From Macrostomum lignano (taxonomy: Eukaryota): a stretch of 64,000 nt of DNA. The notes below the pieces were generated by a model. The model saw nothing but the letters and a program-made list of their open reading frames with translations. It did no database searches and had not been told where the DNA came from. The stretch covers positions 62,001 through 126,000 of the forward strand of contig NIVC01001448.1 of assembly GCA_002269645.1 (NCBI GenBank), given 5' to 3'. Shown here one piece after another: positions 19,611 through 54,337 of this stretch (positions are counted from its first letter, which is position 1; each line of letters starts with the position of its first letter). Made by a program: the position numbers and the translations under genes.

Positions 19611-19670
19611 CAGCCAGCCAGCCCCGCGGCCTCATTGCAGCGCTGAGCCCAGCATCCCAACTGCTTCATC

Positions 19671-25017: not shown

Positions 25018-28000
25018 TCAGTCTGACTCAGCCTTCCTTTTCCGGTCTCGACGTTGTGACTCGACTTTGAGGACTCCGGCTGCTGCATCAAGTCTGTCGA
25101 ACTTCATCAGTCTCATTCGACTGAGCTTGGCGTGAGTCCAGCTGTCTCTCTGCTCTGCTGCAGTTTCCATGGAAACCAGGCGACCCAAGTCGGCCCCGTC
25201 TCGCCGCAGCCTCGCCCTCGCCCACAGCCTCCGCTCCTCATCTTCCCTGCTGCGGTGAGCGCCGCTGTCGCTGCCGCTGCGGTACGAAACTCGCCACCGC
25301 TTCTGCCTGACCCAGCCGATCTTCTCCTCGTCCTGCGTCTCCATGGCGACGCGTCTCTTTTTCTCGATCATCTCCATCTGCTGCAGGCTGAGCTCCACGT
25401 GCTCGCGGCAGTCGCTGTAGTGAGCCAGAGTGAGCAGCTCCTCCAAGTCCGGGTCTCCAAGCATATCTTTCGAGTCCGAGTCTCCAAGCAGCTCTTCCGA
25501 GTCCGAGTCTCCAAGCATATCTTTCGAGTCCGAGTCTCCAAGCATCGCTTCCGAGTCCGGGTCTCCAAGCATATCTTTCGAGTCCGAGTCTCCAAGCAGC
25601 TCTTCCGAGTCCGAGTCTCCAAGCATATCTTTCGAGTCCGAGTCTCCAAGCATATCTTTCGAGTCCGAGTCTCCAAGCAGCTCTTCCGAGTCCGAGTCTC
25701 CAAGCATATCTTTCGAGTCCGAGTCTCCAAGCATCGCTTCCGAGTCCGGGTCTCCAAGCATATCTTTCGAGTCCGAGTCTCCAAGCAGCTCTTCCGAGTC
25801 CGAGTCTCCAAGCATATCTTTCGAGTCCGAGTCTCCAAGCATATCTTTCGAGTCCGAGTCTCCAAGCAGCTCTTCCGAGTCCGAGTCTCCAAGCATATCT
25901 TTCGAGTCCGAGTCTCCAAGCATATCTTTCGAGTCCGAGTCTCCAAGCATATCTTTCGAGTCCGAGTCTCCAAGCAGCTCTTCCGAGTCCGAGTCTCCAA
26001 GCATATCTTTCGAGTCCGGGTCTCCAAGCATATCTTTCGAGTCCGGGTCTCCAAGCAGCTCTTCCGAGTCCGAGTCTCCAAGCAGCTGTTCAATCCAATG
26101 ATCAAATGCGATTGCAGGTGCGCGATTGCGGAGCAGCTCAGCTTGGAGACTCCAGCTCAGGCAGCGGAAGTTCACGTACAGGTGGGAGGAGAGAGGCTGC
26201 GACAGTCTGGCTGTGAACAGAGTCTGCGTGAACTCGGGAAGGAATGGGAAGCGAGGCGGAGAGTCGCAGGGGAGGCAGAACCTCCATGCCCAGTCTGAGT
26301 CTTCTGGCAAATTAGTTTGGTCATAGTCTTCATCTCTTTGAATTTCCTGTTGCCTCAACCCTGACTTAACCTGATGTCTCTGCAGCTCCATCGTGAGTCT
26401 CTCAGCCTCCTCAGATTCTCCGAACTTCAAATGCGCCATGGCGGTCATGCACAGGGCGGCGCACTCGCAACGCTGCAGCTCATGCAGAAGACTGAGGTGC
26501 TTCATCAGGGTGTCTCTGTCGCTTGATTCCGACTGCAGCTCGCTCACACAGTGGTGCACCGCAATGTACACGTCTGCGAAAATAGTTTTATAACTTCCTT
26601 CCCTGATCTCCGTGACAGCAGGCGGTGCTGTCAGAGGCAGCAGAGTGAACGGGTGAAAGTAGAACTTCTCTGACTGCAGAGGTCTCACGAGTCCCCTAAG
26701 CTGCTTGGCCACTCCGCTGATGTCGCTTCTCAATTCACAAAGTCGGTCTCGAACCCTTGCCTTCGTGTTGTCGAAGTCGCCGCCGATTCCAGCGTTCTTG
26801 AAGTAGAGCGGAGCGTCGGGCATGAAGAAGTGCGGCATGCACTCATCGGGCGAGCTGCTCGAGTCGATGAAGTTCAGAATCATGTCGAGAGACTCCTTGA
26901 GCAGAGCGATCAGATTATGGGGCTGCCAAGCCTCAGTTTCAGGATCTGTGCCATGCTTCTCCAGCATTGTGAAGAGCAGAGTCTTTGCATGGTAGGTCTT
27001 GAGTCCAGGTGTGTCCAGAGTGAGAGGCAAGTGTCTCTTGAAGATGAACTTGATGAGTGTGAACAGCTGGCCCTGGACTGTGCTCAGCTGTCTCATGATG
27101 CGTTTCTCCTGGAAGCTGAAGCTCACTCTGAGCTCGTTGGTCGAGCTCGGTCTGGTCGCCCGCACGAGATGAACTGCATTGTCATTGTCACTTGTATCAA
27201 GCAGTTCTCTAATTCTGTCCTCACAGAAACTGCTGCAGCACCAGATCGCATGGCACGTGTCCTGTGCAGGCCGCACACCGCACGCCGTGGCTGTCACTGC
27301 AGGTTCGCTGCCTGCAGAGCACAGTGAGCGGAGAGTGGCTTTGTGGTGAGTGAAAAAGATGGCTTGGTTTGAAACTGCTTGCAGGGGCACCGCTATGGAG
27401 TTGATGGTGGGCAGAGAAAGAGGAACTGTGTCGTAACCCGGGTCGGTTTGGGTGCCCAGTCCCGAGTACAATATATATTATACGTGATATAACAGGCGTT
27501 GTGACGCTCTGTCTCTTTTATGAATACGAGCAGGCGTAACGACGCTCTGCGATAATAGTCCGATCGCTCTGGTGTTGTGACACTCAGAGTTCATGCTGCG
27601 GCTCGAGGTGTGGTGACACTCTCGAGTGCTTCTAGTCTCGATACTGTAGGTTGTACACACTATATAGAGTAGACGGTACAGTACTACAAAAGCTATATGA
27701 TCTCCCGGCGTTATGACGCTCTGGCAAGAACTCAGCCTAACAAGCTCCCAGAAAAGAAAGAACTCAAACAGCAGGCGGCTTACCAGCCGCAGCCAACCAG
27801 CCTGAGCAGGGGGCAGGGGCACGGCTGGGGAGGGGCACGCGCAAAGCCCGGCCGGCAGCCAGACCCTGCCACGCCCGCCAACCCCCCAACCAGCCCCAAA
27901 GTGCAACGCGCCCTGCCAACTGACAAGGATGCATGCACTACAAATGAATTTTACTTTCTGTCAGATCAGGTTTTCACGTATTGCGTATTGTAGGCATGCT

Positions 28001-30217
28001 TATAATGTGTGTGCATGGGATTGCATAATAATTGTTTCTATGAGAGAGGTGCGATCGGAGTAATTGGTTGCCACAATTTGTATTTAAAGCGAAATGAGTG
28101 CTGGGTGGTATTTCAGCAAGGTTTTGAACTCAGGTTGAAGTTGTGAACTCAGAAATTCGGCCACTCGGTATCGAATCAAAATGAATGATTATTGGACAAA
28201 TCCAACAAATCCTGCTGCATGCGGGTCTCAGCATTCTGATGATGAACCTGCCTCACTCACCTGCTCCCACTTCCACCTGTGCGTGGCCCTCCTTGACCTG
28301 CAGTCGAGTGGCGTCTCTGCAGAAGTCCCTTATTCCTTCGCAGCCACCTACCAGATGGAACTTTTGATTTTGCCCAGCAACCAGCACCGTCCAGTCAATG
28401 TCCGAGTCTGCAGCTGTCCTGCCGTTCACTTGCACCAGACTGTTGGCCCAGCCCTCTGCGTAGCTGCCCGTCATCTGCCTGTAATCCTGTGTGAGGTCTC
28501 GAGCGACTTCTTCCAGCCAGTCAGCCAGTCTATGCTGACACTTTGCTCTCTGCCAGGTGAATCCCGCCTTGCTGAGCAGTCGATGCAGCTCCTCGCTGAG
28601 GTCTTGCTCGGAGTGGTGTGAGAGTCTGGGTGGAGAGGTGAGAGTGGAGTCAATGGAGGCGGATTTAAAAATTGCAGTGGTTCAACCCAAGGGAGGAAGA
28701 CAGTCAGACTCACGGATGGAGGCGTTGAGCGGCTGGCTGTGGGTGCTGAGGGTTTCTGGAATGTGTGAACGAAAGCGAGGTAAGGTAGCGAAGTGATTGC
28801 AAGTAGAATGGCAAGTAATGGCAACTGACTCGATAGGATTCAGCAGCCACAGCACCTGCCGCTGCTCAAATCGCTGTGCGAGCTCCGCACACGTGAGGCC
28901 CTGACTGTCTCGATGGCTGGCATCGGCTCCATAGTCGATGAGAGTCTTGGCTGCTCGCACGTGACCGGCTTGGCAGGCTCGTGACAGAGCAGTGCGACCG
29001 TGAGTGTCTTGAGCGTGGAGTGAGGCGCCGAAATCGATGAGTTTGTGAATGAGTTCGTGATGACCTGCATCAGCTGCGAGCATGAGAGCGGTGGCTCCGG
29101 TGTTGTCGTCTGGGAGATCGACTTGCTGTGTGCTGAATCGCTCATGATTGAGCAGCGGGGCGGCAAGAGCGACGTGTCTTTGGGAGATGGAGAGACGGAG
29201 CAGGCGTGTGATTTGAGCCGGCTGAATTTGAGAAAGGGTGTCGGTGAGAACGGAGTTCCTGCCTTCGATGGCCATAGCAGCAGTGAAGCTGAGGATGGTG
29301 TTGGATTGAAAGAGCCATTGGGGCTCGAGGCCGAGAAAGGCAACGACATTTTCGTGAAGACGAGAGCAAGACTTGACTGCGCATTGGAAACGGAGCTTCG
29401 CTTTTAGATCGTCACTTGAGAGACGAGAGATGAGAGACTTGACGATTTTAAAGTGACCATTGTCTGCAGCAGATTCGGCAGCTTTGATGCAGCAGGTGTC
29501 CCTGTTTGATTGGCCATTGATTTGTGAGAGGAGAAACTCGACGATTTCAAAGTGACCATTGTCTGCAGCAGATTCGGCAGCTTTGATGCAGCAGGTGTCC
29601 CTGTTTGATTCGTCATTGATTTGTGAGAGGAGAAACTCGACGATTTCAAAGTGACCATAATTTGCAGCATTTTCGGCAGCTTTGATGCAGCAGGTTTCCC
29701 TGTTTGATTGGTCATTGATTTGTGAGAGAAAATGCTTGACGTCTTCAAAGTGACCACAAACTGCAGCAATTTCGGCAGCTTTGATGCAGCAAGTGTCCCT
29801 GTTTGATTCGTCATTGATTTGTGAGAGAAAATGCTTGACGTCTTCAAAGTGACCACAAACTGCAGCAATTTCGGCAGCTTTGATGCAGCAAGTGTCCCTG
29901 TTTGATTTGTCATTGATTTTTGAGAGGAGAAACTCGACGATTTCAAAGTGATCATTTTCTGCCGCTTTTTCGGCAGCTTTGATGCAGCAGGTGTCCCTGT
30001 TTGATTTGTCATTGATTTTTGAGAGGAGAAACTCGACGATTTCAAAGTGATCATTTTCTGCCGCTTTTTCGGCAGCATTGATGCAGCAGGTGTCCCTGTT
30101 TGATTGGTCATTGATTTGTGAGAGGAAAGAGGTGACGTCTTCAAAGCGACCATTGCGTGCAGCATCAATAATGTTTTCGGTGGTCTCTCGCTGATGTCGG
30201 CTTTGATTTTGGTCCAT
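25018..30217 (-). CDS. ankyrin-repeat + Mab-21/cGAS-like nucleotidyltransferase (cGLR), paralog 1; predicted exons 30217-28714, 28602-28261, 27311-25018 (about 1379 aa)
   Basis: About 8 33-aa ANK-like units, canonical ANKs (ALMLAADAGHHELIHKLIDFGA; GRTALSRACQAGH), NTase motif TGSYAEG..DSDIDW, Mab-21 motifs LRVSFSFQEK..VQGQLFTLIKFIFK, LKTYHAKTLLF, CMPHFFMP. GTGAGT donors at 28713 and 28260, ctctgcag acceptor at 27312. The exon-2 acceptor is uncertain (see finding). Confidence 0.85.
25440..26085 (-). repeat. in-frame 27-bp coding minisatellite (23 extra DSDSKDMLG/DSDSEELLG units) inside cGLR paralog 1
   Basis: Counted from the ORF. Paralogs have a single LLGDPDLEELL. Confidence 0.95.
29410..30160 (-). 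repeat. 99-bp coding tandem repeat (about 8 ankyrin-like units)
   Basis: SQINDQSNRDTCCIKAAEKAAxNGHFEIVEFL units. Confidence 0.9.
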
Positions 30218-30239
30218 TGTTCTGGAGAGCGGAATTGGA

Positions 30240-31145: not shown

Positions 31146-32351
31146 AGAAGAAAGGGAGGTGGAGAAGAGAGGGAGGGAGGGAGAAGAAAGGGAGGGGGAG
31201 AAGAGAGGGAGGGGGAGAAGAGAGGGAGGGGGAGAAGAAACGGAGGGAGGGATTTTTAATTTGTTTTACTGTGGCTCTCGTGTTTGCCCCACAATGCGTG
31301 CTTGCGTCACCTTGCAGCTGAGCTCTGCAGCCGCTCCATGTAGCTTTTGGTTCCGCAAATATAAGCCCGATATTTACTCAGATCTGACGCGATTTGTCTG
31401 TTGACTGTCTCCGTGTTGGTTTCGCTTTCAATACTGAGGTCTTCAGCTCCATCACCCAGCTGCCCAGATCCTCAGCATCACCCAGCTGCCCAGATCCTCA
31501 GCTGCATCACCCAGCTGCCCAGCTCCTCAGCTGCATCACCCACCTGCCCAGCTCCTCAGCTCCATCACCCAGCTGCCAAGATCCTCAGCTCCATCATCCA
31601 TCTGCCCAGATCCTCTATGGTTGCTATATCTAATCCACAAAAAATTAATCTACGAAGTTACAAAATTCCTTACTATCTACTTCCTATTTAATCAGTAGTG
31701 TACCTGAACTATGAGCAGAGAAATGTGCTGCAATTGGCGCGATTCTCGTAAAAAAGCAGAGTTCCCCATGGCTATTATGATGTTAAATCTTTGAGCATAC
31801 GCTCGTACATACTACTAACTGATCTATACTTAGTAGTACGAGTATAAGGCGTTTTGATAGGATGCCTAAGGCTGCTTGTTAGTAGTTTCAGAGGTCAGTT
31901 ATAGTGTCAGGGTGCCTGAGCTGGATCAGGATGTCAGAAGCTGGGTCAGGATGTCAGAAGCTGGGTCAGGATTTCAGAAGCTGGGTCAGAATGTCAGAAG
32001 CTGGGTCAGGATTTCAGAAGCTGGGTCAGGATGTCAGAAGCTGGGTCAGGATGTCAGAAGCTGTGTCAGGATTTCAGAAGCTGGGTCAGGATGTCAGAAG
32101 CTGGGTCAGGATGTCAGAAGCTGTGTCAGGATTTCAGAAGCTGGATCAGGATGTCAGAAGCTGGGTCAGGATGTCAGAAGCTGTGTCAGGATGCCAGAAG
32201 CTATGTCAGGATTTCAGAAGCTGGGTCAGGATGTCAGAAGCTGGGCGTCAGGCTGTCAGCTGTTCAGCTCGCCCCAAACCGCACTGTCGCGGCCACTCAC
32301 TACTTGCAGTAGCGGGTGTCAGCCGGCAGGAAGCGGCACAGAAAGTACACA

Positions 32352-35300
32352 ATGTACGACAGCGGCAACCACAAAGAATCGCACAGCAGGGAGGACATCT
32401 GCTGCCGGCTGTTCATCGGAGGCCTGTCCCCGTCAGTGACCTCTGACAGCCTGCACAAGTACTTCAGCCAGTACGGCACTGTGCAGCACTGCAATGTGCC
32501 CAAGGACCCCAAGACTCAGAGATCCAAGGGCTACGGCTTTCTGACGTACAAGGACCGGGAGAGTGTGGACTCCGCCCAGCTGCACCGGCCTCACGTGCTG
32601 GATGGTCGCCAGGTGCGAGGCTGAGTTGTGTGGGCGGCTTTTGAGTAGCCTTGAAGTTGAACTGGCTCAGAATCTGCTGCTCAACTGCCTGCTGAGCAGA
32701 GCTGGTTAACTGGCTCAGAATCTGCTGCTCAACTGCCTGCTGAGCAGAGCTGGTTAACTGGCTCAGAATCAGCTGCTCAACTGCCTGCTGAGCAGAGCTG
32801 GTTAACTGAGTCGCCTGAACTGGCACTGAAAATCGCTCACCAAAAATCGCCCTAAGTCGCCCCAAAATCGCCCCAAATCGCCCCAAAATCGCCCCAGGTC
32901 GAGACGAAGCGCGCGATGCCCCGCGAAGAAGCCAACAACCCGGAGGCGCACATCACCACCAAGAAGCTGTTTGTCGGCGCCCTTCGCAATGTTCATGAGG
33001 GAGCTGTCAGGCTGTCAGTCATTGCCGGAGTATGCAATATTTTAAATCATCAAAGTACATTTAATACAGTATATTCATTAGGAACATGTACAGTACAGTA
33101 AAATTTCTCAAACAGCTCGCGCAAAAGCCAGTTAAGTTTAAAAAGTTAAACATGTAAATATTTAAAATGAACATTTTTGATTTAAAAACAAAATTTATTA
33201 AAAAGGCGGAGAGGCTTACAAAATTCCGAGTTCAACTCAAGCTGCTGCATCAAGTCTCTCCAGCTGGCTGCTGGCTGAGGAGGTGCCGGCTGACCTTTGA
33301 TGCTATTGTGACCTTGCAGCCTTTTATGTACTTTTATTCTTGTCTTCAGGGATTTTGCAGGTGATTCACTGTAGGATTCTCATTTTGTATTTAGGAATTT
33401 ACTTTTGTTAACTCAAAATCATGAAAGCTCTTAGCACGCGGCAGTTTGAAGGCAGCATTGAGGGGCAGAAAGCACAGAGGGTAAGATCGAGAACTGAGGC
33501 ACGAACTCTTCCATTATTTTCAAATTTGTGTGTTAACTGAAAAAAGCAAGCAAACAGACTACAAATGTATTTTAGCAAAGTAACAAAATGATGAATTGCA
33601 AATTGGGGAATTTTATCATTTCGTCGATATCTGACGAGCTGAGGGTGGGATTTCATGAGGGAGCTGTCAGGCTGTCAGTCACTGAGTGTTCATGAGGGAG
33701 CTGTCAGGCTGTCAGTCACTGAATGTTTATGAGGGAGCTGTCAGGCTGTCAGTCAGTGAATGTTCATGAGGGGGCTGTCAGGCTGTCAGTCACTGAATGT
33801 TCATTAGGGAGCTGTCAGGCTGTCAGTCACTGAATGTTCATGAGAAGCTGTCAGGGGGACGCTTTCATAAAACATAAATTTCACAACGCCTAAATTTAAT
33901 AACGCCTAAACCCAAAAATGCAGCGTCCTTCACATCGCCTAAATCTCAAAACGCCTAAAATTTTTGCTAATTAAAAATTTTAATGTTTTGAAATTTAGGC
34001 GATATGAAATTTAGGCGTTGTGAAGTCATGTGCTTTAGGCATTGTGAAATTTAAGCCTTAGAAAGCGCCCCCCTGTCAGGCTGTCAGTCACTGAAGGGTA
34101 CATGAGTACCTGATGAAAGTACATAAAATTAATTTGCAGACTGATTGAGCTGAATTTATGAGCAGGTACTTAAATAATCAGGGAGCATGTACACACAGCA
34201 TTTTAAGCTATCAAAGAACATCTAAAATATTTATCAGTAACATATGCAGTAAAAGTTTCTCGAAAAGCCCCCCAAATCCAGAAAACCTTTAAAAATTACG
34301 AGTTCAACTCAAGCTGCTGCATCAAGTCTCTCCAGCTTCTCCCTGACCCAACAGACCTTTGAATTTTCCAGGTTCATGCAGATAACTGCTACCTGTGCAT
34401 TTGGCTTGAATATTTCATTAAACAGCAGTGGCAATTGGGTATTGAAGTCCGCAAAACAAAATCGCAGAGAAAAGCCCGCATCAAAGCAGACACGCAGTTT
34501 GAAGGGAAAAAGCTATTCAGCATGCAGTGTGAATTGAATCGCAGCAAAAATGTACAAAACTGCAGTTCATAGCATGAGGGCTGCTCGCACTCCATTCCAT
34601 TTCCAGAGTAAATTGTATTCGCAACGAAAATAGCACCAGGCAGTCAGTCTGACTCGGCCTTCCTTTTACGACCTCGACTTTGCGACTCGACTTTGAGGAC
34701 TCCGGATGCTGCATCAAGTCCCTCCAGCTTCTGCCTGACCCAGCCGATCTTCTCCTCGTCCTGCGTCTCCATGGCGACGCGTCTCTCTTTCTCGATCATC
34801 TCCATCTGCTGCAGGCTGAGCTCCACGTGCTCGCGGCAGTCGCTGTAGTGAGCCAGAGTGAGCAGCTCCTCCAAGTCCGGGTCTCCAAGCAGCTGTTCAA
34901 TCCAATGATCGAATGCGATTGCAGGTGCGCGATTGCGGAGCAGCTCAGCTTGGAGACTCCAGCTCAGGCAGCGGAAGTTCACGTACAGGTGGGAGGAGAG
35001 AGGCTGCGACAGTCTGGCTGTGAACAGAGTCTGCGTGAACTCGGGAAGGAATGGGAAGCGAGGTGGACAGTCGCAGGGGAGGCAGAACCTCCATGCCCAG
35101 TCTAAAACTTTTGGCAGTCTTATACTTTTTAGCAAAATACCCTCTTCATAAATATCCTGTGGCTCCAACCCTGACTCAACCTGATGTCTCTGAAGCTCCA
35201 TCGCGAGTCTCTTAGCCTCCTCAGATTCTCCGAACTTCAAATGCGCCATGGCGGTCATGCACAGGGCGGCGCACTTGCACCACTGCAGATGATTCAGGAG

Positions 35301-36640
35301 ACTGAGCTGCCTCATCAGGGTGTCTCTGTCACTCGATTCTGACTGCAGCTCGCTCACACACTGGTGCACCACACTGTACACGTCTGCGAACTTGTAGTAA
35401 AACTCATAGTGACCACTTCCATAGTGACGCTGAGCAGAGCTGGTTAACTGGCTCAGAATCAGCTGCTCAACTGCCTGCTGAGCAGAGCTGGTTAACTGGC
35501 TCAGAATCAGCTGCTCAACTGCCTGCTGAGCAGAGCTGGTTAACTGGCTCAGAATTAGCTGCTCAACAGCCTGCTGAGCACAGCTGGTTAACTGGCTCAG
35601 AATCAGCTGCTCAACTGCCTGCTGACCAGAGCTGGTCAACTGAGTCGCCTGAACTGGCACTGAAAATCGCTCACCAAAATCGCCCTAAGTCGCCCCCAAA
35701 ATCGCCCCAGGTCGAGACTAAGCGCGCGATGCCCCGCGAAGAAGCCAACAACCCGGAGGCGCACATCACCACCAAGAAGCTGTTTGTCGGCGCCCTTCGC
35801 AAGGACGTCACCGACCAGCTGCTGCGGGACTATTTCTCAGCCTACGGCACCATTGTCGACGCGTACATCGTCAGGGACAACGCCACGGGAGACAGTCGCG
35901 GCTTCGGCTTCGTCGTGTTCGATGACTATGACCCCGTGGACAAAGTGATGCTGTACAAGCCTCACCTGCTGCGCGCTGGAGGCTCAGTCAGCATCACGGA
36001 CGTGAAGAAAGGCCTCACCAAGGAGGAGCTGGCCAGCGCGCACCTTCGCGAGCAGCAGCAGTCTCGCGGCGGCGGCAGCAGCGGGGGCGGCAGCGGCAGC
36101 GGCATGCAGGCCAACATGGGCGGCCCTCCCGGCGCTATGATGATGTCAGGCGGTGCCATGGGGCCCTGGGGTCCCATGATGGGACCCATGATGGGCGGCG
36201 GCAGCGGACCGAAGCCGCAGCAGCAGCAGCACGGAAAGCAGCCGCAGGCCGCGTCTTCAAAGCCCTCCAAGAGTCCCGCTGGGGTTGGCGGCGGCGGCGG
36301 CCCAGGACCCAACGGCATGGGCGGCCCTGGCGGCTCGATGGGACCCTACGGACCCATGGGCATGATGGGCATGATGGGACCCGGTCCCATGGGTCCTATG
36401 GGCATGATGGGACCAGGTCCAATGGGCCCAATGGGCATGATGGGACCAGGTCCTATGGGTCCAATGGGCATGATGGGACCAGGTCCCATGGGCCCGATGG
36501 GCATGATGGGACCTGGCTTCGGGTTCTATCCGAATCAGTGCGGTGGCTACGGACCGATGGGGCGCGGAGGCTGGGGCGGATTCCGCAGCTCGCCCTATTC
36601 AATGATGCCGCCGCACAGAACCCGCAGCAACTCCACCTGA
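32352..36640 (+). CDS. hnRNP A/B gene 1 copy 2; exon 1 32352-32612, complete exon 2 35711-36640 (about 396 aa); intron holds a truncated exon-2 copy and an antisense cGLR fragment
   Basis: Exon 1 near-identical to 14698-14958 with donor gtgcga at 32613; intact acceptor cccag|GTC at 35711; ORF 35729-36640 near-identical to 15575-16522. Confidence 0.85.
32898..32989 (+). pseudogene. truncated duplicate of hnRNP gene 1 exon 2 (92 nt) with intact splice acceptor
   Basis: cccag|GTCGAGACGAAGCGC..GCCCTTCGCAA then an abrupt switch to the 37-bp satellite (tgttcatgagg). Confidence 0.9.
32990..35100. repeat. near-identical direct duplicate of 43430-45540 (cGLR 3' end and downstream region)
   Basis: Offset 10440-10441 throughout; the same MITE and satellites; only isolated differences seen. 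Confidence 0.95.
33854..34073. mobile_element. 220-bp MITE inserted in the 37-bp satellite
   Basis: TIR GGGGGACGCTTTC / GAAAGCGCCCCCC (12/13), apparent 5-bp TSD tgtca (33849-33853; 34074-34078), internal subterminal repeats cgcctaaa (left) and tttaggc (right). Confidence 0.85.
34644..35428 (-). pseudogene. 5'-truncated C-terminal fragment of a third cGLR paralog
   Basis: KFADVYSVVHQCVSELQSE..WAWRFCLP..RKRKAESD*. The 5' end is fused to the 48-bp hnRNP intron satellite; the ORF start at 35660 is a GTG in intron sequence. Confidence 0.85.
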
Positions 36641-42440: not shown

Positions 42441-43259
42441 TCAGTCTGGTGAAAGAGTCTTCAGTGTGTCGAATTTTACTCAAGGTTGGCAGAGAATTTA
42501 TTAAAGTGACCGCAAAGCTTTGTGTTTGAAAAATATCAGGCAAAACATGCGAGCAAGGATCCGTGTCTCTGGTCTGCGAAATGTCCCGTGGGAAAATACG
42601 CTCCCACGTGTCACGCAGGGGCTATCGGTTGACAAGCTTAGCAGATCGGATTTCACGTTTTCGTAATAATTCTGGTCTAAATACCAGCAAGTCTTGCAGC
42701 CAGACGTTGGCGAGCTTCTACGGCTCGTATTATGAGTGCAGCGCCTTTTTTAATCAGTGGTAGATTGTGTACAGTGTATATGATTTTTGAGGTAGACAAT
42801 CATTAATTATTTACAGTGGCGAAGCTCTAGTGAATACGAAGATCTAGTGAAATGACAACGCCGTTGCATGGAAACTTCTACGGCAGCGACCTATATATTT
42901 TGACACGATATTATAAAGATAAAAGGGACTAAAAACGCAAAGTAACAATTGTAGAAGTGATGAGTATGAGTACGCGACAGTGTACGCACAAGCGAAAGTA
43001 CAGAGAGGAGATAAAATAGCCAGAGCAGCGCAACCCGAAAACACACAACCCAACACAGCACCAACACCCAAGACACTCGTGACACACGCCACAACAAAAA
43101 CCACATGCACAAGCACAAGCGTTGATTAATTAGCCAACAGCGTGAGACAATGATTATGAGCTGTTTGAGTAGCGACTGGCTTTGCCACAACTGAGCGGCT
43201 TCCCATGATTACGAATTTGGTTCCGGAGTAGCACTGCGTCTCATTGTAGGACTCAATTC

Positions 43260-43460
43260 AGTCACTGAGTGTTCATGAGGGAGCTGTCAGTCACTGAATG
43301 TTCATGAGGGAGCTGTCAGGCTGTCAGTCACTGAATGTTCATGAGGGAGCTGTCAGTCACTGAATGTTCATGAGGGAGCTGTCAGGCTGTCAGTCACTGA
43401 ATGTTCATGAGGGAGCTGTCAGTCACTGAATGTTCATGAGGGAGCTGTCAGGCTGTCAGT
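43260..43460. repeat. 37-bp satellite family array (further arrays at 33650-33850 and 44095-44290)
   Basis: Same unit as 23865-24315, some 29-bp shortened units. Confidence 0.9.
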
Positions 43461-44293
43461 CATTGCCGGAGTATGCAATATTTTAAATCATCAAAGTACA
43501 TTTAATACAGTATATTCATTAGGAACATGTACAGTACAGTAAAATTTCTCAAACAGCTCGCGCAAAAGCCAGTTAAGTTTAAAAAGTTAAACATGTAAAT
43601 ATTTAAAATGAACATTTTTGATTTAAAAACAAAATTTATTAAAAAGGCGGAGAGGCTTACAAAATTCCGAGTTCAACTCAAGCTGCTGCATCAAGTCTCT
43701 CCAGCTGGCTGCTGGCTGAGGAGGTGCCGGCTGACCTTTGATGCTATTGTGACCTTGCAGCCTTTTATGTACTTTTATTCTTGTCTTCAGGGATTTTGCA
43801 GGTGATTCACTGTAGGATTCTCATTTTGTATTTAGGAATTTACTTTTGTTAACTCAAAATCATGAAAGCTCTTAGCACGCGGCAGTTTGAAGGCAGCATT
43901 GAGGGGCAGAAAGCACAGAGGGTAAGATCGAGAACTGAGGCACGAACTCTTCCATTATTTTCAAATTTGTGTGTTAACTGAAAAAAGCAAGCAAACAGAC
44001 TACAAATGTATTTTAGCAAAGTAACAAAATGATGAATTGCAAATTGGGGAATTTTATCATTTCGTCGATATCTGACGAGCTGAGGGTGGGATTTCATGAG
44101 GGAGCTGTCAGGCTGTCAGTCACTGAGTGTTCATGAGGGAGCTGTCAGGCTGTCAGTCACTGAATGTTTATGAGGGAGCTGTCAGGCTGTCAGTCAGTGA
44201 ATGTTCATGAGGGGCTGTCAGGCTGTCAGTCACTGAATGTTCATTAGGGAGCTGTCAGGCTGTCAGTCACTGAATGTTCATGAGAAGCTGTCA

Positions 44294-44513
44294 GGGGGAC
44301 GCTTTCATAAAACATAAATTTCACAACGCCTAAATTTAATAACGCCTAAACCCAAAAATGCAGCGTCCTTCACATCGCCTAAATCTCAAAACGCCTAAAA
44401 TTTTTGCTAATTAAAAATTTTAATGTTTTGAAATTTAGGCGATATGAAATTTAGGCGTTGTGAAGTCATGTGCTTTAGGCATTGTGAAATTTAAGCCTTA
44501 GAAAGCGCCCCCC
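44294..44513. mobile_element. 220-bp MITE, duplicate of 33854-34073
   Basis: Identical TIRs and TSD at offset 10440. Confidence 0.85.
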
Positions 44514-45083
44514 TGTCAGGCTGTCAGTCACTGAAGGGTACATGAGTACCTGATGAAAGTACATAAAATTAATTTGCAGACTGATTGAGCTGAATTTATG
44601 AGCAGGTACTTAAATAATCAGGGAGCATGTACACACAGCATTTTAAGCTATCAAAGAACATCTAAAATATTTATCAGTAACATATGCAGTAAAAGTTTCT
44701 CGAAAAGCCCCCCAAATCCAGAAAACCTTTAAAAATTACGAGTTCAACTCAAGCTGCTGCATCAAGTCTCTCCAGCTTCTCCCTGACCCAACAGACCTTT
44801 GAATTTTCCAGGTTCATGCAGATAACTGCTACCTGTGCATTTGGCTTGAATATTTCATTAAACAGCAGTGGCAATTGGGTATTGAAGTCCGCAAAACAAA
44901 ATCGCAGAGAAAAGCCCGCATCAAAGCAGACACGCAGTTTGAAGGGAAAAAGCTATTCAGCATGCAGTGTGAATTGAATCGCAGCAAAAATGTACAAAAC
45001 TGCAGTTCATAGCATGAGGGCTGCTCGCACTCCATTCCATTTCCAGAGTAAATTGTATTCGCAACGAAAATAGCACCAGGCAG

Positions 45084-48000
45084 TCAGTCTGACTCGGCCT
45101 TCCTTTTACGACCTCGACTTTGCGACTCGACTTTGAGGACTCCGGATGCTGCATCAAGTCCCTCCAGCTTCTGCCTGACCCAGCCGATCTTCTCCTCGTC
45201 CTGCGTCTCCATGGCGACGCGTCTCTCTTTCTCGATCATCTCCATCTGCTGCAGGCTGAGCTCCACGTGCTCGCGGCAGTCGCTGTAGTGAGCCAGAGTG
45301 AGCAGCTCCTCCAAGTCCGGGTCTCCAAGCAGCTGTTCAATCCAATGATCGAATGCAATTGCAGGTGCGCGATTGCGGAGCAGCTCAGCTTGGAGACTCC
45401 AGCTCAGGCAGCGGAAGTTCACGTACAGGTGGGAGGAGAGAGGCTGCGACAGTCTGGCTGTGAACAGAGTCTGCGTGAACTCGGGAAGGAATGGGAAGCG
45501 AGGCGGAGAGTCGCAGGGGAGGCAGAACCTCCACGCCCAGTCTGAGTCTTCTGGCAATTCAGTTTCGCTTAAGGCTGTCACTTGAATATCCTGTGGCTTC
45601 AACCCTGACTTAACCTGATGTCTCTGCAGCTCCATCGCGAGTCTCTCAGCCTCCTCAGATTCTCCGAACTTCAAATGCGCCATGGCGGTCATGCACAGGG
45701 CGGCGCACTTGCACCACTGCAGCTCATGCAGAAGACTGAGCTGCCTCATCAGGGTGTCTCTGTCGCTCGATTCCGACTGCAGCTCGCTCACACACTGGTG
45801 CATCACACTGTACACGTCTGCAAACTTGAAGTAATAAAACTCTGACCAATAAGTTCCTTTCCTGATCTCCATGTCAGCAGGCGGCGCTGTCAGAGGCAGC
45901 AGAGTGAACGGGTGAAAGTAGAACTTCTCTGACTGCAGAGGTCTCACGAGTCTCCTCAGCTGCTCGACCACTCCGCCGATGTCGCTTCTCAGCTCACAAA
46001 GTCGGTCTCGAACCCTCGCCTTCGTGTTGTCGAAGTCGCCGCCGATTCCAGCGTTCTTGAAGTAGAGCGGAGCGTCGGGCATGAAGAAGTGCGGCATGCA
46101 CTCATCGGGCGAGCTGCTCGAGTCGATAAAGCTCAGCATCATGTCGAGAGACTCTTTGAGTAGAGTGATCAGATTGTGGGGCTGCCAAGCTTCAGCTTTA
46201 GTAGCGCCATGAATTCCAAGCGGGATCCACCATGCTTCAGCTTTCGGATCTGTGCCATGCTTCTCCAGCATGAAGAATAGCAGAGTCTTTGCATGGTAGG
46301 TCTTGAGTCCAGGTGTGTCCAGAGTGAGCGGCAAGTGTCTCTTGAAGATGAACTTGGTGAGTGTGAACAGCTGGCCCTGGACTGTGCTCAGGTCTCTCAT
46401 GATGTGTTTCTCTTGGAAGCTGAAGCTCACTCTGAGCTCGTTGGTCTTACTCGGTCTGGTCGCTCGCACGAGGTGAACAAGATCGCTGTATCCAAGCAGT
46501 TGTTTCACTCTGTTTTTACAGAAACTGCTGCAGCACTCGATCGCATGGCACGTGTCTTGTGCAGGCCGCACACCGCACGCCGTGGCTGTCACTGCAGGTT
46601 GGCTGCCTGCAGAGCGCAGTGAGAGGAGAGTCGCTTTGTTAAATTCGTTAAAATGCTTGTAGAGAGTTATTAGACCATACCGTAATGCTCTACTTAAAGT
46701 AATATTCTAAGGAAGTCAATTTCTTTCAATATGAGTCATATCTATTTTAGGAATCACGCGCAAACAGAATGATTTAGAACCCTACATTGTTTGATCAAGG
46801 AACCGGATTTCAACAGCTGTATTTGTTTTTCTATGGTAATGCTCAAACATGCATGACCGCTTAATCAAACATTTTTGACCTAAGTAAATACCCAATCCCA
46901 AACCGGTTTTTCTCCAAAATTTTGCTATAAATATAAGTCAACATTCGAGTCAAAAATTCAGACTCAGGGCGGTCTCTAAGAAGACTCCGAAGAAATAAGA
47001 AGACCAATCACAGAGGGACCACACCTGTCCAATTGGTAAGCGTTTACCCGATTTAGTTAATTGTTAATAGCGCTAATAAGTTGATTAATTGAGTATACGA
47101 GAGCCACTTATCGCTCGACACATTTGAGAAAGGCCTCCTTGTTTCCTAGGATACATTCGTAGAGGATTTATTGAATTGAATTGAGTTATCCGTTACGTTT
47201 CGGACGTAACGAAGAAGACGCCCTTCAGGAGGACCTATCACAGAAAGTTAGAGGATTCAATTGTTCATAAGGGCGCACGTTCTACTGTTAATTCCGAGCT
47301 CGAGGACCGTCAAGAAATTCTGATTCGCTCTCGTTTTTGGTCGACCCACAGATAAAAGTCAAGGACTCAAGAAGACTACTCCAAATCGGCCGCTACTACC
47401 GTTCAACCAAGTCAGGCAGAGTCACACACCCACCGCAAGAACCAGAAGCCTACCAACCACAAGAGGATCCGCTGCAGTAAGTTATTTGAACTGGTAAATA
47501 CCTAGGCACTTGTTCCCCAGTGTCTAGAAGTGGGAGTTTTTGAGTGACTGATCACCACTCTTAAACTCTTCATGCTTGCAGGGGCACCGCTATGGAGCTG
47601 ATGATGGGCCGAGAAAGAGAAAAATTATTTTACGCTTCTACTTTCTCTCAGCTCAGGTTTTAACGTATCGCGTTTTGTAGACATGAGTATAATATAACGC
47701 GCCCTCACAAAATTCTACATTGATGCCCCGCAAAAAGTAATGTTTATATTATTGTCATTAATGCAAGAGATTTCCGGGCATCAATGTCGAAAATTCCGGG
47801 CTCTGTGTTATTACACAGAATGCAGTTGAAATGTCTATGGCCATTCTTTCTTTTGATTTGCGAGCTCTGGGCCATAGACGAAGTTTTGATGGTCCAGGTC
47901 TAGAGATGGACAGTAAAACTGAAGGAGCTAGAAAAATGCTAAATGTATATTTTTTCAAATCTATTTGATATTTTTCAAATCTGTCAGGACTAAGCTGTGC

Positions 48001-51000
48001 TTGACTTCTGAAAATGATCTACCATTTAATTAATTATTCTAATCTGCCGGGAGAAATGGTTTCCGGTATGTCGGCCGAAGAGCTGGCGTGGGTATCATCC
48101 GAGTCGAACAGCCGGTATTTGGAGGAACTGAGCGAAGAATTTGCGCGCAAGATAGAATCAGAAGAGATTCTCGACATTCCGGAGGACGTGATGCAAGAGT
48201 TGAATCAGCTTGAACGAGATGGAATACCGGACTCCTTCGCCCGGCAGATGGAGGACAATGTGAGCCGCTTCAAGACTTTTCTGGAAGAAATGAAACTGTC
48301 AACGGATCTGCCGCGAATTCCAAAGTCGATTCTGGCTAATTATTTGCGTTTCTTCTATTCGACACTGCGAACAAAGGACGAGCGGTACTATGCTCCAGCA
48401 AGTCTCATCTGCATTAGAGCCGGACTGCATCGCTTCTTCTGTCTCAGTCGCCCAGAGATTAACATTAACATTAACTTCTGCTGTTATTTGTTTGCCTCTG
48501 TTTCACACTGTTGTTCTATTTCGCTCTATTACTGAGATAGAAAATACCATAGACAATTCAAGGCACGAATTGCCACATTGACGCCCGGAAAAGGGACGCT
48601 TAAGCCGGCAAAAATTAATGACAATGTATGCTAAGTTTCTGTTGAGATTCCCCTGCCTTACTTCTTAAAAAATAAAAAAATTACAAACAGTGCGAGAAAG
48701 GGTGAAAATATGTGAATAAAAACCAGACGATATAAACCTCATGGCAGAGAAGCTGCTTGGAGCTGCTGGAGGCTGAATTAAAATTCGAGCAAATTAATGG
48801 GCAAATCCAGCGAATCCTGCTGCATGCGGATCTCAGCATTTTGATGATGAACCCAGCGTCACTCACCTGCTCCCACTGCCACCTGTGCGTGGCCCTCCGT
48901 GACCTGCAGCCGAGTGGCGTTTTGGCAGGATCCAGATCTTCCTTTGCAGCCACCTTCCAGATGGAACTCTTGCCCTTCAACCAGCACAGTCCAGTCAATG
49001 TCCGAGTCTGCAGCTGTCCTGCCGTTCACTTGCACCAGACTGTTGGCCCAGCCCTCTGCGTAGCTGCCCGTCATCTGCCTGTATTCCTGTGTGAGGACTC
49101 GAGCGACATGTTGCAGCCAGTCAGCCAGTCTCTGCTGACACTTTGCTCTCTGCTCGGTGAATCCCGCATCGCTGAGCAGTCGATGCAGCTCCTCGCTCAG
49201 GCGCCTGTCTTGCTGAGAGTCGTCTGAGAGTCTGGGGGGGGGGAAGATGAGAAAGGAGTCAGTGGAGTGAAGCGTGGCCCAAGCTCGACCCAAGAGAGGG
49301 CAGTGAAAGCGGTCAGACTCACTGATGAAGGCGTTGAGCGGCTGGCTGTGGGTGCTGAGGGTTTCTGGAATGTGTGAAGGAAAGCGAGGTAAGGTAGCGA
49401 AGTGATTGCAAGTAGAATGGCAAGTAATGGCAACTGACTCGGTGAGACTTAGCAGCCGCAGCACCTGCCGCTGCTCAAATCGCTCTGCGAGCTGCGCACA
49501 GGTGAGGCCCTGACTGTCTCGATGGCTGGCATCGGCTCCATTGTCGATGAGAATCTTGGCTGCTTGCACGTAACCGGCTTGGCAGGCTCGTGAGAGAGCG
49601 GTGCGACCGTGAGTGTCTTGAGCGTGCAGTGAGGCGCCGAGATCGATGAGTTTGTGAATGAGTTCGTGATGACCTGCATCAGCTGCCAGCATGAGAGCGG
49701 TGGCTCCGGTGTTGTCGTCTGGGAGATCGACATGCTGTGTGCTGAATCGCTGATGATTGAGCAGTGTGGCGGCAAGAGCGACGTGTCTTTGAGAGACGGA
49801 GAGACGGAGCAGCTGTGTGATTTGAGGTGGCTGCATCTGAGAGAGGGTTTTGTTGAGAACGGAGTTTCTGTCTTCGATGGCCATTGCTGCAGTGAAGCTG
49901 AGGATGGTGTTGTATTGAAAGAGCCAGTCGGGCTCGAGACCGAGGGAGGCAACGACATTTTCGTGAAGACGAGAGCAAGCCGCGATTGCGCATTGGAAAC
50001 GGAGATTCGCTCTCTGATCCAGACTAGAGACACAGGAGATGAGAAACTTGACGATTTCAAAGTGACCATTGTTTGCAGCTTTTTCGGCAGCATTGATACA
50101 GCAGGTGTCCCTATTTGATTGGTCATTGATTTGTGAGACGAGAAACTTGACGATTTCAAAGTGACCATTGTTTGCAGCTTTTTCGGCAGCATTGATGCAG
50201 CAGGTGTCCCTATTTGATTGGTCATTGATTTGTGAGACGAAAAACTTGACGATTTCAAAGTGACCCTTGACTGCAGCTTTTTCGGCAGCATTGATGCAGC
50301 AGGTGTCCCTATTTGATTGGTCATTGATTTGTGAGAGGAGAAACTTGACGATTTCAAAGTGATCAAAAATTGCAGCTTTATCGGCAGCTTTGATGCAGCA
50401 GGTGTCCCTGTTTGATTGGTCATTGATTTGTGAGACGAGAAACTTGACGATTTCAAAGTGACCATTGTTTGCAGCTTTTTCGGCAGCATTGATGCAGCAG
50501 GTGTCCCTATTTGATTGGTCATTGATTTGTGAGACGAGAAACTTGACGATTTCAAAGTGATCAAAAATTGCAGCTTTATCGGCAGCTTTGATGCAGCAGG
50601 TGTCATTGGTCATTGATTTGTGAGAGGAGAAACTTGACGATTTCAAAGTGATCAAAAATTGCAGCTTTATCGGCAGCTTTGATGCAGCAGGTGTCCCTGT
50701 TTGATTGGTCATTGATTTGTGAGACGAGAAACTTGACGATTTCAAAGTGACCATTGTTTGCAGCTTTTTCGGCAGCATTGATGCAGCAGGTGTCCCTATT
50801 TGATTGGTCATTGATTTGTGAGACGAGAAACTTGACGATTTCAAAGTGACCATTGTTTGCAGCTTTTTCGGCAGCTTGATGCAGCAGGTGTCCCTGTTTG
50901 ATTGGTCATTGATTTGTGGGACGAAAAACTTGACGATTTCAAAGTGACCATTGTCTGCAGCTTTTTCGGCAGCTTTGATGCAGCAGATGTCCCTGTTTGA

Positions 51001-54000
51001 TTGGTCATTGATTTGTGGACGAGAAACTTGACGATTTCAAAGTGACCATTGCTGCAGCATTTTCGGCAGCTTTGATGCAGCAGTGTCCCTTTTTGATTGG
51101 TCATTGATTTGTGAGACGAGAAACTTGACGATTTCAAAGTGACCATTGTCTGCAGCTTTTTCGGCAGCTTTGATGCAGCAGGTGTCCCTGTTTGATTGGT
51201 CATTGATTTGTGAGACGAGAAACTTGACGATTTCAAAGTGACCATTGTCTGCAGCTATTTTGGCAGCTTTGATGCAGCAGTAGTCCCTTTTTGATTGGTC
51301 ATTGATTTGTGAGACGAGAAACTTGACGATTTCAAAGTGACCATTGTCTGCAGCTATTTTGGCAGCTTTGATGCAGCAGTGTCCCTTTTTGATTGGTCAT
51401 TGATTTGTGAGACGAGAAACTTGACGATTTCAAAGTGATCAAAAATTGCAGCTTTATCGGCAGCTTTGATGCAGCAGGTGTCCCTTTTTGATTGGTCATT
51501 GATTTGTGGGACGAGAAACTTGACGATTTCAAAGTGACCCTTGACTGCAGCTTTTCGGCAGCTTTGATGCAGCAGGTGTCCCTTTTTGATTGGTCATTGA
51601 TTTGTGGGACAAGAAACTTTTCAAAGTGACCATTGTCTGCAGCTTTTTCGGCAGCTTTGATGCAGCAGGTGTCCCTGTTTGATTGGTCATTGATTTGTGA
51701 GACGAGAAACTTGACGATTTCAAAGTGACCATTGTCTGCAGCTTTTTCGGCAGCTTTGATGCAGCAGGTGTCCCTGTTTGATTGGTCATTGATTTGTGAG
51801 ACGACAAACTTGACGATTTCAAAGTGACCATTGTCTGCAGCTTTTTCGGCAGCTTTGATGCAGCAGGTGTCCCTGTTTGATTGGTCATTGATTTGTGAGA
51901 CGACAAACTTGACGATTTCAAAGTGACCATTGTCTGCAGCTTTTTCGGCAGCGTTGATGCAGCAGGTGTCCCTGTTTGATTGGTCATTGATTTGTGAGAC
52001 GACAAACTTGACGATTTCAAAGTGACCATTGTCTGCAGCTTTTTCGGCAGCATTGATGCAGCAGGTGTCCCTGTTTGATTGGTCATTGATTTGTGAGACG
52101 ACAAACTTGACGATTTCAAAGTGACCATTGTCTGCAGCTTTTTCGGCAGCTTTGATGCAGCAGGTGTCCCTGTTTGATTGGTCATTGATTTGTGAGACGA
52201 CAAACTTGACGATTTCAAAGTGACCATTGTCTGCAGCTTTTTCGGCAGCTTTGATGCAGCAGGTGTCCCTGTTTGATTGGTCATTGATTTGTGGGACGAA
52301 AAACTTGACGATTTCAAAGTGACCCTTGACTGCAGCTTTTTCGGCAGCTTTGATGCAGCAGATGTCCCTGTTTGATTGGTCATTGATTTGTGGGACGAGA
52401 AACTTGACGATTTCAAAGTGACCATTGCCTGCAGCATTTTCGGCAGCTTTGATGCAGCAGTAGTCCCTTTTTGATTGGTCATTGATTTGTGAGACGAGAA
52501 ACTTGACGATTTCAAAGTGACCATTGTCTGCAGCTTTTTCGGCAGCTTTGATGCAGCAGGTGTCCCTGTTTGATTGGTCATTGATTTGTGAGACGAGAAA
52601 CTTGACGATTTCAAAGTGACCATTGTCTGCAGCTATTTTGGCAGCTTTGATGCAGCAGTAGTCCCTTTTTGATTGGTCATTGATTTGTGAGACGAGAAAC
52701 TTGACGATTTCAAAGTGACCATTGTCTGCAGCTATTTTGGCAGCTTTGATGCAGCAGTAGTCCCTTTTTGATTGGTCATTGATTTGTGAGACGAGAAACT
52801 TGACGATTTCAAAGTGACCATTGTCTGCAGCTATTTTGGCAGCTTTGATGCAGCAGTAGTCCCTTTTTGATTGGTCATTGATTTGTGAGACGAGAAACTT
52901 GACGATTTCAAAGTGATCAAAAATTGCAGCTTTATCGGCAGCATTGATGCAGCCGGTGTCCCTTTTTGATTGGTCATTGATTTGTGGGACGAGAAACTTG
53001 ACGATTTCAAAGTGACCCTTGACTGCAGCCTTTTCGGCAGCTTTGGTGCAGCAGGTGTCCCTTTTTGATTGGTCATTGATTTGTGGGACAAGAAACTCGG
53101 CGATTTCAAAGTGACCATTGTCTGCAGCTTTTTCAACAGCTTTGATGCAGCAGGTGTCCCTGTTTGATTGGTCATTGATTTGTGAGACGACAAACTTGAC
53201 GATTTCAAAGTGACCATTGTCTGCAGCTTTTTCGGCAGCTTTGATGCAGCAGGTGTCCCTGTTTGATTGGTCATTGATTTGTGAGACGACAAACTTGACG
53301 ATTTCAAAGTGACCATTGTCTGCAGCTTTTTCGGCAGCTTTGATGCAGCAGGTGTCCCTGTTTGATTGGTCATTGATTTGTGAGACGACAAACTTGACGA
53401 TTTCAAAGTGACCATTGTCTGCAGCTTTTTCGGCAGCGTTGATGCAGCAGGTGTCCCTGTTTGATTGGTCATTGATTTGTGAGACGACAAACTTGACGAT
53501 TTCAAAGTGACCATTGTCTGCAGCTTTTTCGGCAGCATTGATGCAGCAGGTGTCCCTGTTTGATTGGTCATTGATTTGTGAGACGACAAACTTGACGATT
53601 TCAAAGTGACCATTGTCTGCAGCTTTTTCGGCAGCTTTGATGCAGCAGGTGTCCCTGTTTGATTGGTCATTGATTTGTGAGACGACAAACTTGACGATTT
53701 CAAAGTAACCATTGTTTGCAGCTTTTTCGGCAGCATTGATGCAGCAGGTGTCCCTGTTTGATTGGGCATTGATTTGTGAGACGACAAACTTGGCGATTTC
53801 AAAGTGACCATTGTCTGCAGCTTTTTCGGCAGCATTGATGCAGCAGGTGTCCCTGTTTGATTGGTCATTGATTTGTGGGACAAGAAACTCGGCGATTTCA
53901 AAGTGACCATTGTCTGCAGCTTTTTCGGCAGCATTGATGCAGCAGGTGTCCCTGTTTGATTGGTCTTTGATTTGTGAGACGACAAACTTGACGATTTCAA

Positions 54001-54337
54001 AGTGACCCTTGACTGCAGCCTTTTCGGCAGCTTTGATGCAGCAGGTGTTCCTTTTTGATTGGTCATTGATTTGTGGGACAAGAAACTCGGCGATTTCAAA
54101 GTGACCATTGTCTGCAGCTTTTTCGGCAGCTTTGATGCAGCAGGTGTCCCTGTTTGATTGGTCATTGATTTGTGAGACGAGAAACTTGACGATTTCAAAG
54201 TCACCGTTGTCTAAAGCACTGTGAGTGGCCTGAACGATATCACTTAAGCTGGACGATGTCGTACCATGGGCACGTCGAGCAGTTTGCGGGATGTTTTCGG
54301 TCGTGACGAACTGATGCTGACTTTGATTTTGGCTCAT
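45084..54337 (-). CDS. ankyrin-repeat + Mab-21/cGAS-like nucleotidyltransferase (cGLR), paralog 2; exons about 54337-49323, 49223-48867, 46606-45084; several frameshifts at 50600-51560 (pseudogene or assembly errors)
   Basis: Start MSQNQSQHQ homologous to MDQNQSRHQ of paralog 1; about 42 ANK-like units; canonical ANKs; TGSYAEG..DSDIDW; GCAG|gtgagt at 48866; ctgcag|GC at 46606; Mab-21 motifs in ORF 45084-46592. Confidence 0.8.
47758..48603 (+). mobile_element. internally deleted Crypton-like (tyrosine-recombinase) DNA transposon in cGLR2 intron 2
   Basis: TTAA at both ends (47758-47761; 48600-48603), 17-bp subterminal inverted repeats (47771-47787 / 48575-48591, 16/17). ORF 48014-48535 carries LANYLRFFYSTLRTKDERYYAPASLICIRAGLHRFF, resembling the Crypton/DUF3504 (KCTD1/ZMYM/QRICH1) N-terminal region. 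Confidence 0.75.
50050..54210 (-). repeat. 99-bp coding tandem array, roughly 42 ankyrin-like units
   Basis: Period 99 checked at 51721/51820; 27 units counted in ORF 51332-54337 before the frameshifts. Confidence 0.95.

Follow-up and report, generated by a model that had tools for sequence, protein, structure and literature searches.

Animal cGAS-like receptors (cGLRs) have been surveyed by Li et al. 2023 (PMC9980059), who curated about 3,000 of these proteins and found that 87% have no added domain, that a minority are fused to tetratricopeptide (TPR) or ankyrin (ANK) repeats, and that most flatworms have none at all; in their Table S5 other flatworms stand at 0 cGLR and 0 STING genes, and Macrostomum is not listed there. 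In the ANK-fused cGLRs of other animals, for example those of Stylophora pistillata (Fig. 1C/4C of PMC9980059), the cGLR domain is joined to ankyrin repeats for which a role in protein or ligand interaction has been proposed. The closest described relatives of the genes reported here are five cGLRs of the flatworm Macrostomum lignano (Table S3 #89-93, including PAA68676.1 and PAA93208.1), which were cloned for a biochemical screen as constructs shortened to the enzyme region (PMC9980059). Here, we analyzed a 64-kb stretch of M. lignano contig NIVC01001448.1 (the window), in which two copies of an ANK-cGLR gene (copy 1 and copy 2) and a 3' gene fragment lie on the minus strand.

We consider it probable (roughly 0.6) that these sequences are members of a Macrostomum ANK-cGLR family, with an apparently functional copy 1, a frame-broken copy 2 and a 3' fragment, and that copy 1 encodes a ligand-triggered nucleotidyltransferase (NTase) with an ankyrin binding surface, as sequence and structural models suggest. 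The family and its assignment to the cGLRs are already published, and the window genes are further paralogues or alleles. The M. lignano paralogues cloned by Li et al. 2023 are 77-84% identical to the window genes; PAA68676.1 (BOX15_Mlig016402g1, hereafter P0008) has 82% identity with the copy 2 query and 84% with the core of copy 1, and PAA93208.1 is close to another family protein, P0012. The original prediction, made from the DNA of the window, presented the family as new, a view that does not survive comparison with Li et al. 2023 (PMC9980059), where M. lignano members had been listed and cloned and ANK-cGLR fusions described. P0008 shares with the window genes the motifs GSYAEGW, DSDIDW and RPAQDTCHA together with the 33-aa units, the ANK and NTase domains and a C-terminal extension. 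Copy 1 differs from it in having 7.5 units, where P0008 has about 4, and in its additional acidic 27-bp array, and the array of copy 2 is far longer than that of any annotated member.

A tblastn search of the window with the enzyme core recovered two full copies and one 3' fragment, the latter covering only core residues 359-530, and no further copy in the 64 kb. The predicted count of two full genes and one partial gene agrees with this search as far as the core is concerned, but copy 2 is not a full gene as assembled because the frame of its repeat array is broken. Copy 1, in contrast, is intact: its three introns (74, 88 and 949 nt) are all bounded by GT..AG, and the spliced open reading frame (ORF) of 1362 aa contains no stops (coordinates of all features are collected in Table 1). 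The proposal that splicing joins ANK-like repeats, canonical ankyrin repeats and a Mab-21 NTase into one protein is thereby upheld, with the addition of a 42-nt mini-exon that had been missed. This mini-exon, bordered by TTCCAG and GTGAGT, lies in another frame than the exon 1 ORF and encodes NPQHPQPAAQRLH, a peptide that also bridges the ANK and NTase domains of homologues P0001 and P0008; the junctions of copy 1 match these two transcript-based M. lignano gene models. Since the Mlig_3_7 annotation behind both models was made from RNA-seq (PMC5730564), transcripts joining ANK and enzyme exons exist for paralogues of the window genes, whose own splicing is predicted. A direct splice from exon 1 to the NTase through a weak GA/GTCTGA donor was ruled out by the homologues, which have the mini-exon with its strong GTGAGT donor. 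Likewise, FIIRMLRPACSRICWI, directly past the exon 3 donor, was considered as a Mab-21 helix and rejected because it is intronic, out of frame and missing from homologues.

The exon structure of copy 2 is as in copy 1, except that its last intron is 2260 nt long rather than 949 nt. The extra 1.3 kb of this intron holds a plus-strand ORF of 173 aa, whose appearance suggested a transposon remnant; no Pfam match was obtained, and this assignment was dropped. The two window copies begin with MDQNQS (copy 1) and MSQNQS (copy 2), without Gly, and some paralogues start with MGQNQS, a possible N-myristoylation signal.

The catalytic motifs are intact in both full copies, as had been predicted: GSYAEGW, DSDIDW and AQDTCHAI are all present, with the common spacing M-T-G-S, 20 residues, D-I-D-W, 59 residues, Q-D-T. 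Both sequences contain the published cGLR motif, h[QT]GS X8-20 [DE]h[DE]h X50-90 h[DE]h, and paralogues with an identical motif were accepted as cGLRs by Li et al. 2023 (PMC9980059). GS[YF]AEGW and DSDIDW are also kept in most paralogues. In an AlphaFold2 model of 530 residues, built on 20 paralogues (pLDDT 81, pTM 0.86), GS follows strand 1 and strand 2 begins with DID. The 50 best PDB matches of this model in Foldseek were without exception cGAS, MAB21L1, MB21D2 or the coral Sp-cGLR1 (50/50; E from 2.6e-6, probability 1.00, target-normalised TM 0.39-0.55), so that the predicted cGAS/Mab-21 fold was recovered and, with it, the structural homology to cGLR/CD-NTase enzymes that Li et al. 2023 use to recognize family members. 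Among PDB sequences, a profile of 12 members found cGAS (E=7e-6) and Sp-cGLR1 (E=0.0035); significance was reached only with this family profile, a single-sequence PDB search placing cGAS only at E ~0.3.

Human and mouse cGAS and human MB21D2 share the fold of the window proteins (Foldseek E 1e-6 to 1e-5, probability 1.0), the GS loop and the layout of the acidic triad, at 13-16% identity; no zinc thumb motif was seen in the window proteins. The GS-to-Asp loop of cGAS has about 11 residues. The window proteins differ in a loop of 20 residues, in a core that is neutral to acidic rather than basic, and in carrying ANK and TPR-like domains as well. In exon 4 of copy 2, 15 residues are duplicated internally and in frame (KAEAW...KAEAW, peptide GTDPKAEAWWIPLGIHGATKAEAW); this duplication falls in a loop of the Mab-21_C lobe and is common to P0001 but not found in copy 1.

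Outside the window, nearly all relatives come from the same species. Protein matches to the enzyme region were from M. lignano in 43 of 44 cases, the remaining one being a JGI protein, and the best was 94% identical. Against 1.84 billion representative proteins clustered at 50% identity, the family profile gave 1068 matches, with 83 clusters at E<=1e-30, and all five that were looked up by name were M. lignano proteins. The family is a large lineage-specific expansion in Macrostomum of at least 83 clusters, almost all ANK-fused. The tail of the profile search (E ~1e-13 to 1e-16) consists of Mab-21 proteins (PF03281+PF20266), often with TPR, of which the named one is from a bivalve, Sinanodonta woodiana (KAL3855470.1). 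Such mollusc proteins are the nearest relatives by profile outside Macrostomum; they have ~720 aa, and a helical C-terminal extension with TPR comes after their PF03281 and PF20266 domains. They are without ANK, and their N-lobe, unlike that of the window proteins, is recognised by Pfam. The ANK fusion of other animals' cGLRs and that of Macrostomum would likely have had independent origins. One relative outside the window, P0026 (BOX15_Mlig012150g1), has an NTase-like domain, ANK and a caspase domain (PF00656) in that order. Of its three catalytic acidic residues, two are substituted (DCDMNW; Ser for the third Asp). By its sequence it resembles a cGLR fold that has lost catalysis and been coupled to a protease, and the loss of acidic residues in P0026 therefore suggests that the fold can serve without catalysis in this family.

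The enzyme is followed by an extension of ~280 aa, which had not been mentioned in the original prediction and whose motifs DWAWRFC, FPFLPEFT and HLYVNFRCLSWSL are among the most conserved of the family. A separate model of this 282-aa C-terminal domain (pLDDT 79.5) has helical hairpins and a small sheet; compared with PDB folds, its best match had E=0.1, and the weak matches were TPR proteins such as IFIT1 and APC/C. Copy 1 carries a second coding minisatellite here, an in-frame 27-bp array in its last exon whose product, (LGDSDSKDM)n, has a net charge of ~-66; only one unit (LLGDPDLEELL) is present at this site in copy 2 and in the fragment.

The 99-bp units of the N-terminal arrays encode ankyrin repeats, being 33-residue helix-turn-helix units that match the ANK profile: Ank_2 matched the long array of copy 2 at E=3.8e-142 over 23 stretches, and copy 1 likewise (Table 1). 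The unit's GH-x-E-I-V-K-F-L aligns with the consensus GH-x-E-V-V-K-L-L, with KAAE instead of TPLH, and units are 90-94% alike within an array. Each unit (e.g., 52189-52091, minus strand) also has a near-invariant Cys-Cys pair, and Arg-Asp where the canonical loop has D-x-x-G; the Cys-Cys pairs would line the ridge of the solenoid, metal binding and lipidation being possibilities. The contrast of 8 versus 42 units drawn in the original prediction sets an intact gene against an array that is broken in frame at seven places. Six 1-nt deletions and one 8-nt deletion change the frame of the copy 2 array 0->2->1->0->1. The ORF that begins with the ATG at 54337 runs through ~26 in-frame units to a stop at 51332, out of frame with the enzyme, and the ORF that is joined to the enzyme (from 50853) starts in the wrong repeat frame and has only ~5.6 in-frame units. 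The seven indels therefore put the start codon and the enzyme of copy 2 in different frames, and copy 2 is either a pseudogene or misassembled. Paralogues with complete N-termini have about 3 to 12 units.

A related locus offers a comparison for the copy 2 array. Contig NIVC01002738.1 of assembly GCA_002269645.1 (PacBio) is 96.65% identical to the window over 8.8 kb and, on this sequence evidence, carries an allele or homeologue of the window locus. The homologous array on that contig comprises 29.4 units with many frameshifts, which fall elsewhere than those of copy 2. Because this second array is itself full of frameshifts, the comparison leaves the choice between pseudogene and misassembly undecided, and the difference between 42 and 29 units may reflect alleles, homeologues or assembly error.

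To describe variation among the units, 40 distinct units from 16 paralogues were compared. The most variable positions, in standard ANK numbering, are 13 and 14 (3.3 and 3.1 bits), the two residues preceding the conserved GH, followed by 28, 26, 10 and 2, and the framework is nearly fixed. Designed ankyrin binders have positions 2, 13 and 14 among their randomised sites, since these face the target. It is plausible that the repeats set ligand specificity, a suggestion compatible with the peak of variability at 13/14. Nevertheless, the predicted contrast between a conserved catalytic module and rapidly changing repeats fails, because amino-acid identity between copy 1 and copy 2 is 83-89% across all domains. 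The ratio of non-synonymous to synonymous substitution rates (dN/dS) between the copies averages about 0.6; by domain, it is 0.55 in the structured ANK, 1.97 in the NTase N-lobe (25 non-synonymous vs 4 synonymous), 0.37 in the remaining NTase and 0.96 in the C-terminal domain. Altered repeat numbers characterise the region as a whole and are not special to the cGLR gene. Tandem arrays, 42 in number, make up 34% of the window, and of the non-coding minisatellite families common to both duplicated segments, 11 of 11 have unequal copy numbers, with ratios from 1.1 to 3.8 (for example, 4.3 vs 16.3 for a 45-bp, 23.2 vs 7.2 for a 26-bp and 23.2 vs 8.2 for a 19-bp repeat).

In the mechanism that we propose, the NTase of copy 1 would be inactive at rest and, once a ligand is recognised, would synthesise a nucleotide second messenger, which would probably be a cyclic dinucleotide. 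The binding surface for the ligand or a partner would be formed by the ankyrin solenoid at the N-terminus, to which the TPR-like C-terminal domain may contribute. This ligand or partner would more likely be a protein than a nucleic acid because the protein is acidic (NTase core pI 6.3-7.8, repeat domain pI 4.9), nucleic-acid-sensing cGLRs being more positively charged (Li et al. 2023, PMC9980059). Unit number would be altered by unequal recombination or replication slippage, as for every minisatellite in the region.

Several observations weigh against this mechanism. The GS-to-Asp-pair loop of 20 residues stands at the ceiling of the published motif, and the third Asp is flanked by Q and T, neither of which is hydrophobic. 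Of the two Pfam models named in the original prediction, Ank matches, whereas the NTase model PF03281 gives no match, even at E<=1; in the enzyme Pfam recognises the helical C-lobe only (PF20266, 25.9 bits, cut-off 24.1). Similarity outside the family is restricted to profile positions ~117-280 plus the C-lobe, and homology of the N-lobe rests on the motifs and the modelled fold. In Table S3 of PMC9980059 none of the five M. lignano constructs is marked 'active', and therefore no close paralogue has been shown to make a product with double-stranded DNA or RNA. A word-seeded search with the C-terminal domain of human STING found no Macrostomum STING; from 390 candidates it returned deuterostome STINGs only, and a search of this kind cannot reach a flatworm homologue. 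Published literature on STING or cGAS in Macrostomum yielded nothing relevant. As for the repeats, any folded ankyrin repeat would be expected to vary at positions 13/14, so that this variability is no proof of diversifying selection, the unit variants of copy 2 (34 non-synonymous to 7 synonymous, vs 79:20 available sites) are near neutral, and so is the pooled ratio of non-synonymous to synonymous polymorphism (pN/pS) within arrays, at 1.1-1.6.

The protein could be a non-enzymatic Mab-21 scaffold, a binding or assembly module like MAB21L1 that signals via partners at its ANK or TPR-like domains, and the place of MAB21L1 among the top fold matches, the substitutions of P0026 and its fusion to ANK and caspase, and the absence of an active label from all five published constructs would fit such a role. 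However, the lack of in vitro activity of many cGLRs has been put down to their unknown ligands (Li et al. 2023, PMC9980059), and the conservation of GS and the three Asp in the two window copies and in most close paralogues argues for selection on catalysis; we hold the scaffold to be very unlikely. A stronger contender, to which we give less than even odds but which has to be taken seriously, is that neutral minisatellite instability and gene decay account for the repeats. The differences of 7.5 vs 42.4 and 23.7 vs 1 units would then be by-products, copy 2 a pseudogene, and unit number irrelevant to specificity. The non-coding minisatellites of the window behave in just this way, and tandem and simple repeats form 15% of the M. 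lignano genome (PMC5730564). Intact paralogues have modest arrays, copy 2 has its seven frame-breaking indels, and dN/dS, about 1-2 in two domains, and the unit changes leave room for drift. Such instability does not readily explain why the distal 26 units of copy 2 are free of frame-breaking indels over 2.6 kb, in an open frame from the conserved N-terminus, or why exons 2-4 have neither stop nor frameshift; furthermore, the unit framework is strongly conserved across paralogues, and so the arrays are constrained as protein.

The same lesions could instead be artefacts, the frameshifts of copy 2 and perhaps its unit count being consensus errors of long reads or misassembly of a real gene that is intact and has another unit number. 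Four of the six 1-nt deletions do fall in short homopolymers (A5->A4, AAA->AA and two CC->C), and the array on NIVC01002738.1 shows that such an array is error-prone to assemble. Yet the 8-nt deletion and the losses outside homopolymers (CAGACAA->CAGCAA and GTCTCAC->GTCCAC) are atypical of consensus errors, the lesions are bunched within 1 kb where 2.6 kb of the same repeat is clean, and the remainder of both genes is clean, so that an artefact appears rather unlikely. More speculative is the idea that near-identical units act as a reshuffling recognition surface, in which unequal recombination among units that differ mainly at the contact positions 13/14, 10 and 2 would give new cGLR specificities. 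The ligands would be proteins or other molecules that are not nucleic acids, and the family would parallel, in an animal, the fungal repeat NLRs. Fungal NLR-like proteins of the HET-E/NWD type have highly conserved internal ANK, TPR or WD repeats. The window genes resemble them in units that are 90-94% identical, in varying unit number and in variability at a few surface positions, but have no NACHT/NB-ARC, their effector being a cGLR nucleotidyltransferase. The idea of a hypervariable sensor is plausible but rests in part on an array without a continuous protein, and we hold its reshuffling form to be quite doubtful. A ligand-triggered NTase with an ankyrin binding surface is our preferred account of copy 1.

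The history of the locus is one of duplication. Copy 1 and copy 2 are 87-92% identical at the nucleotide level and sit in a ~20-kb segmental duplication that includes RRM genes; what had been described as a gene array is a pair within this duplication. The fragment lies in a 2.4-kb duplicate of the 3' part of the copy 2 region (2413 nt at 98.3% identity), which interrupts a 48-bp minisatellite located between two RRM exons. Copy 1, copy 2 and the 3' fragment would go back to two events, a recent segmental duplication of ~20 kb and, later, one of 2.4 kb. The co-duplicated hnRNP-like RRM (PF00076) genes have Gly/Met/Pro-rich tails and internal 33-bp and 45-bp arrays. A linker just before DWAWRFC reads IQVTALSETELPEDS in copy 2 and IYEEGILLKSIRLPKVL in the fragment, a complete difference although the surrounding duplicate is 98.3% identical, and P0001 has the fragment's version; the swap looks like a gene-conversion patch or a hypervariable loop.

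Table 1. Features of the ANK-cGLR locus, with positions counted in the window; the basis of each assignment is given where it was recorded (TRF, Tandem Repeats Finder).
Feature	Position	Strand	Description
Copy 1 ANK-cGLR gene	25018..30217	-	four coding exons, 1362 aa, intact; start at 30217
Copy 1 exon 1	28830..30217	-	N-terminus, 99-bp array, structured ANK; TRF, Pfam Ank_2 E=1.4e-51
Copy 1 exon 2	28714..28755	-	42-nt mini-exon coding NPQHPQPAAQRLH
Copy 1 exon 3	28261..28625	-	NTase N-lobe with spine helix, Gly-Ser, Asp-Ile-Asp
Copy 1 exon 4	25018..27311	-	third Asp, Mab-21_C lobe, TPR-like C-terminal domain, acidic array, basic tail
Copy 1 99-bp array	29427-30165	-	7.5 units of 33 aa (TRF)
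Copy 1 structured ANK domain	from 29392; canonical repeats from 29092	-	unit translations, Pfam
Copy 1 catalytic codons	28468-28463; 28402-28400 and 28396-28394; 27261-27259	-	Gly-Ser; Asp pair; third Asp
Copy 1 C-terminal extension	26664-25430	-	3' of enzyme
Copy 1 27-bp array	25446-26084	-	23.7 units, last exon, in frame (TRF)
Copy 2 paralogue	45084..54337	-	exons 2-4 intact; repeat array expanded, frame broken; motifs intact; start at 54337
Copy 2 exons	..49439, 49364..49323, 49231..48867, 46606..45084	-	structure as copy 1
Copy 2 99-bp array	50036-54212	-	42.4 units, 94% matches between units (TRF)
Zone of seven frame-breaking indels, copy 2 array	50605..51556	-	alignment to consensus unit
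1-nt deletions, copy 2 array	near 51556, 51380, 51084, 51052, 51018, 50878	-	six
8-nt deletion, copy 2 array	near 50605	-	one
ORF in copy 2 last intron	48014-48535	+	173 aa
Copy 2 C-terminal extension	45923-45084	-	3' of enzyme
3' gene fragment	32988..35400; coding part 34644-35400	-	last ~250 codons only
Segment of which the fragment is a duplicate	43429-45834		2.4 kb
Linker before DWAWRFC	~45540-45600 vs ~35100-35160	-	copy 2 vs fragment
hnRNP-like RRM genes	13958-24634 and 31450-43706	+	PF00076
Shared minisatellites	15007-15489 vs 32660-32808 + 35429-35642		
Shared minisatellites	20108-20299 vs 39594-40336		
Shared minisatellites	18997-19608 vs 39024-39211		

Most flatworms are without cGLRs (Li et al. 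2023, PMC9980059), yet in Macrostomum this family has expanded to at least 83 clusters at 50% identity. The locus itself adds little to the published catalogue; what is new is the size and instability of its coding repeat arrays, together with the caution that the largest of these arrays is not an intact gene as assembled. RNA interference is in use in M. lignano. The animal is also amenable to transgenesis (PMC5730564). For most animal cGLRs the ligand has yet to be identified; should the ankyrin solenoid indeed be the sensor, the family would offer a tractable cGLR that recognises something besides double-stranded nucleic acid.

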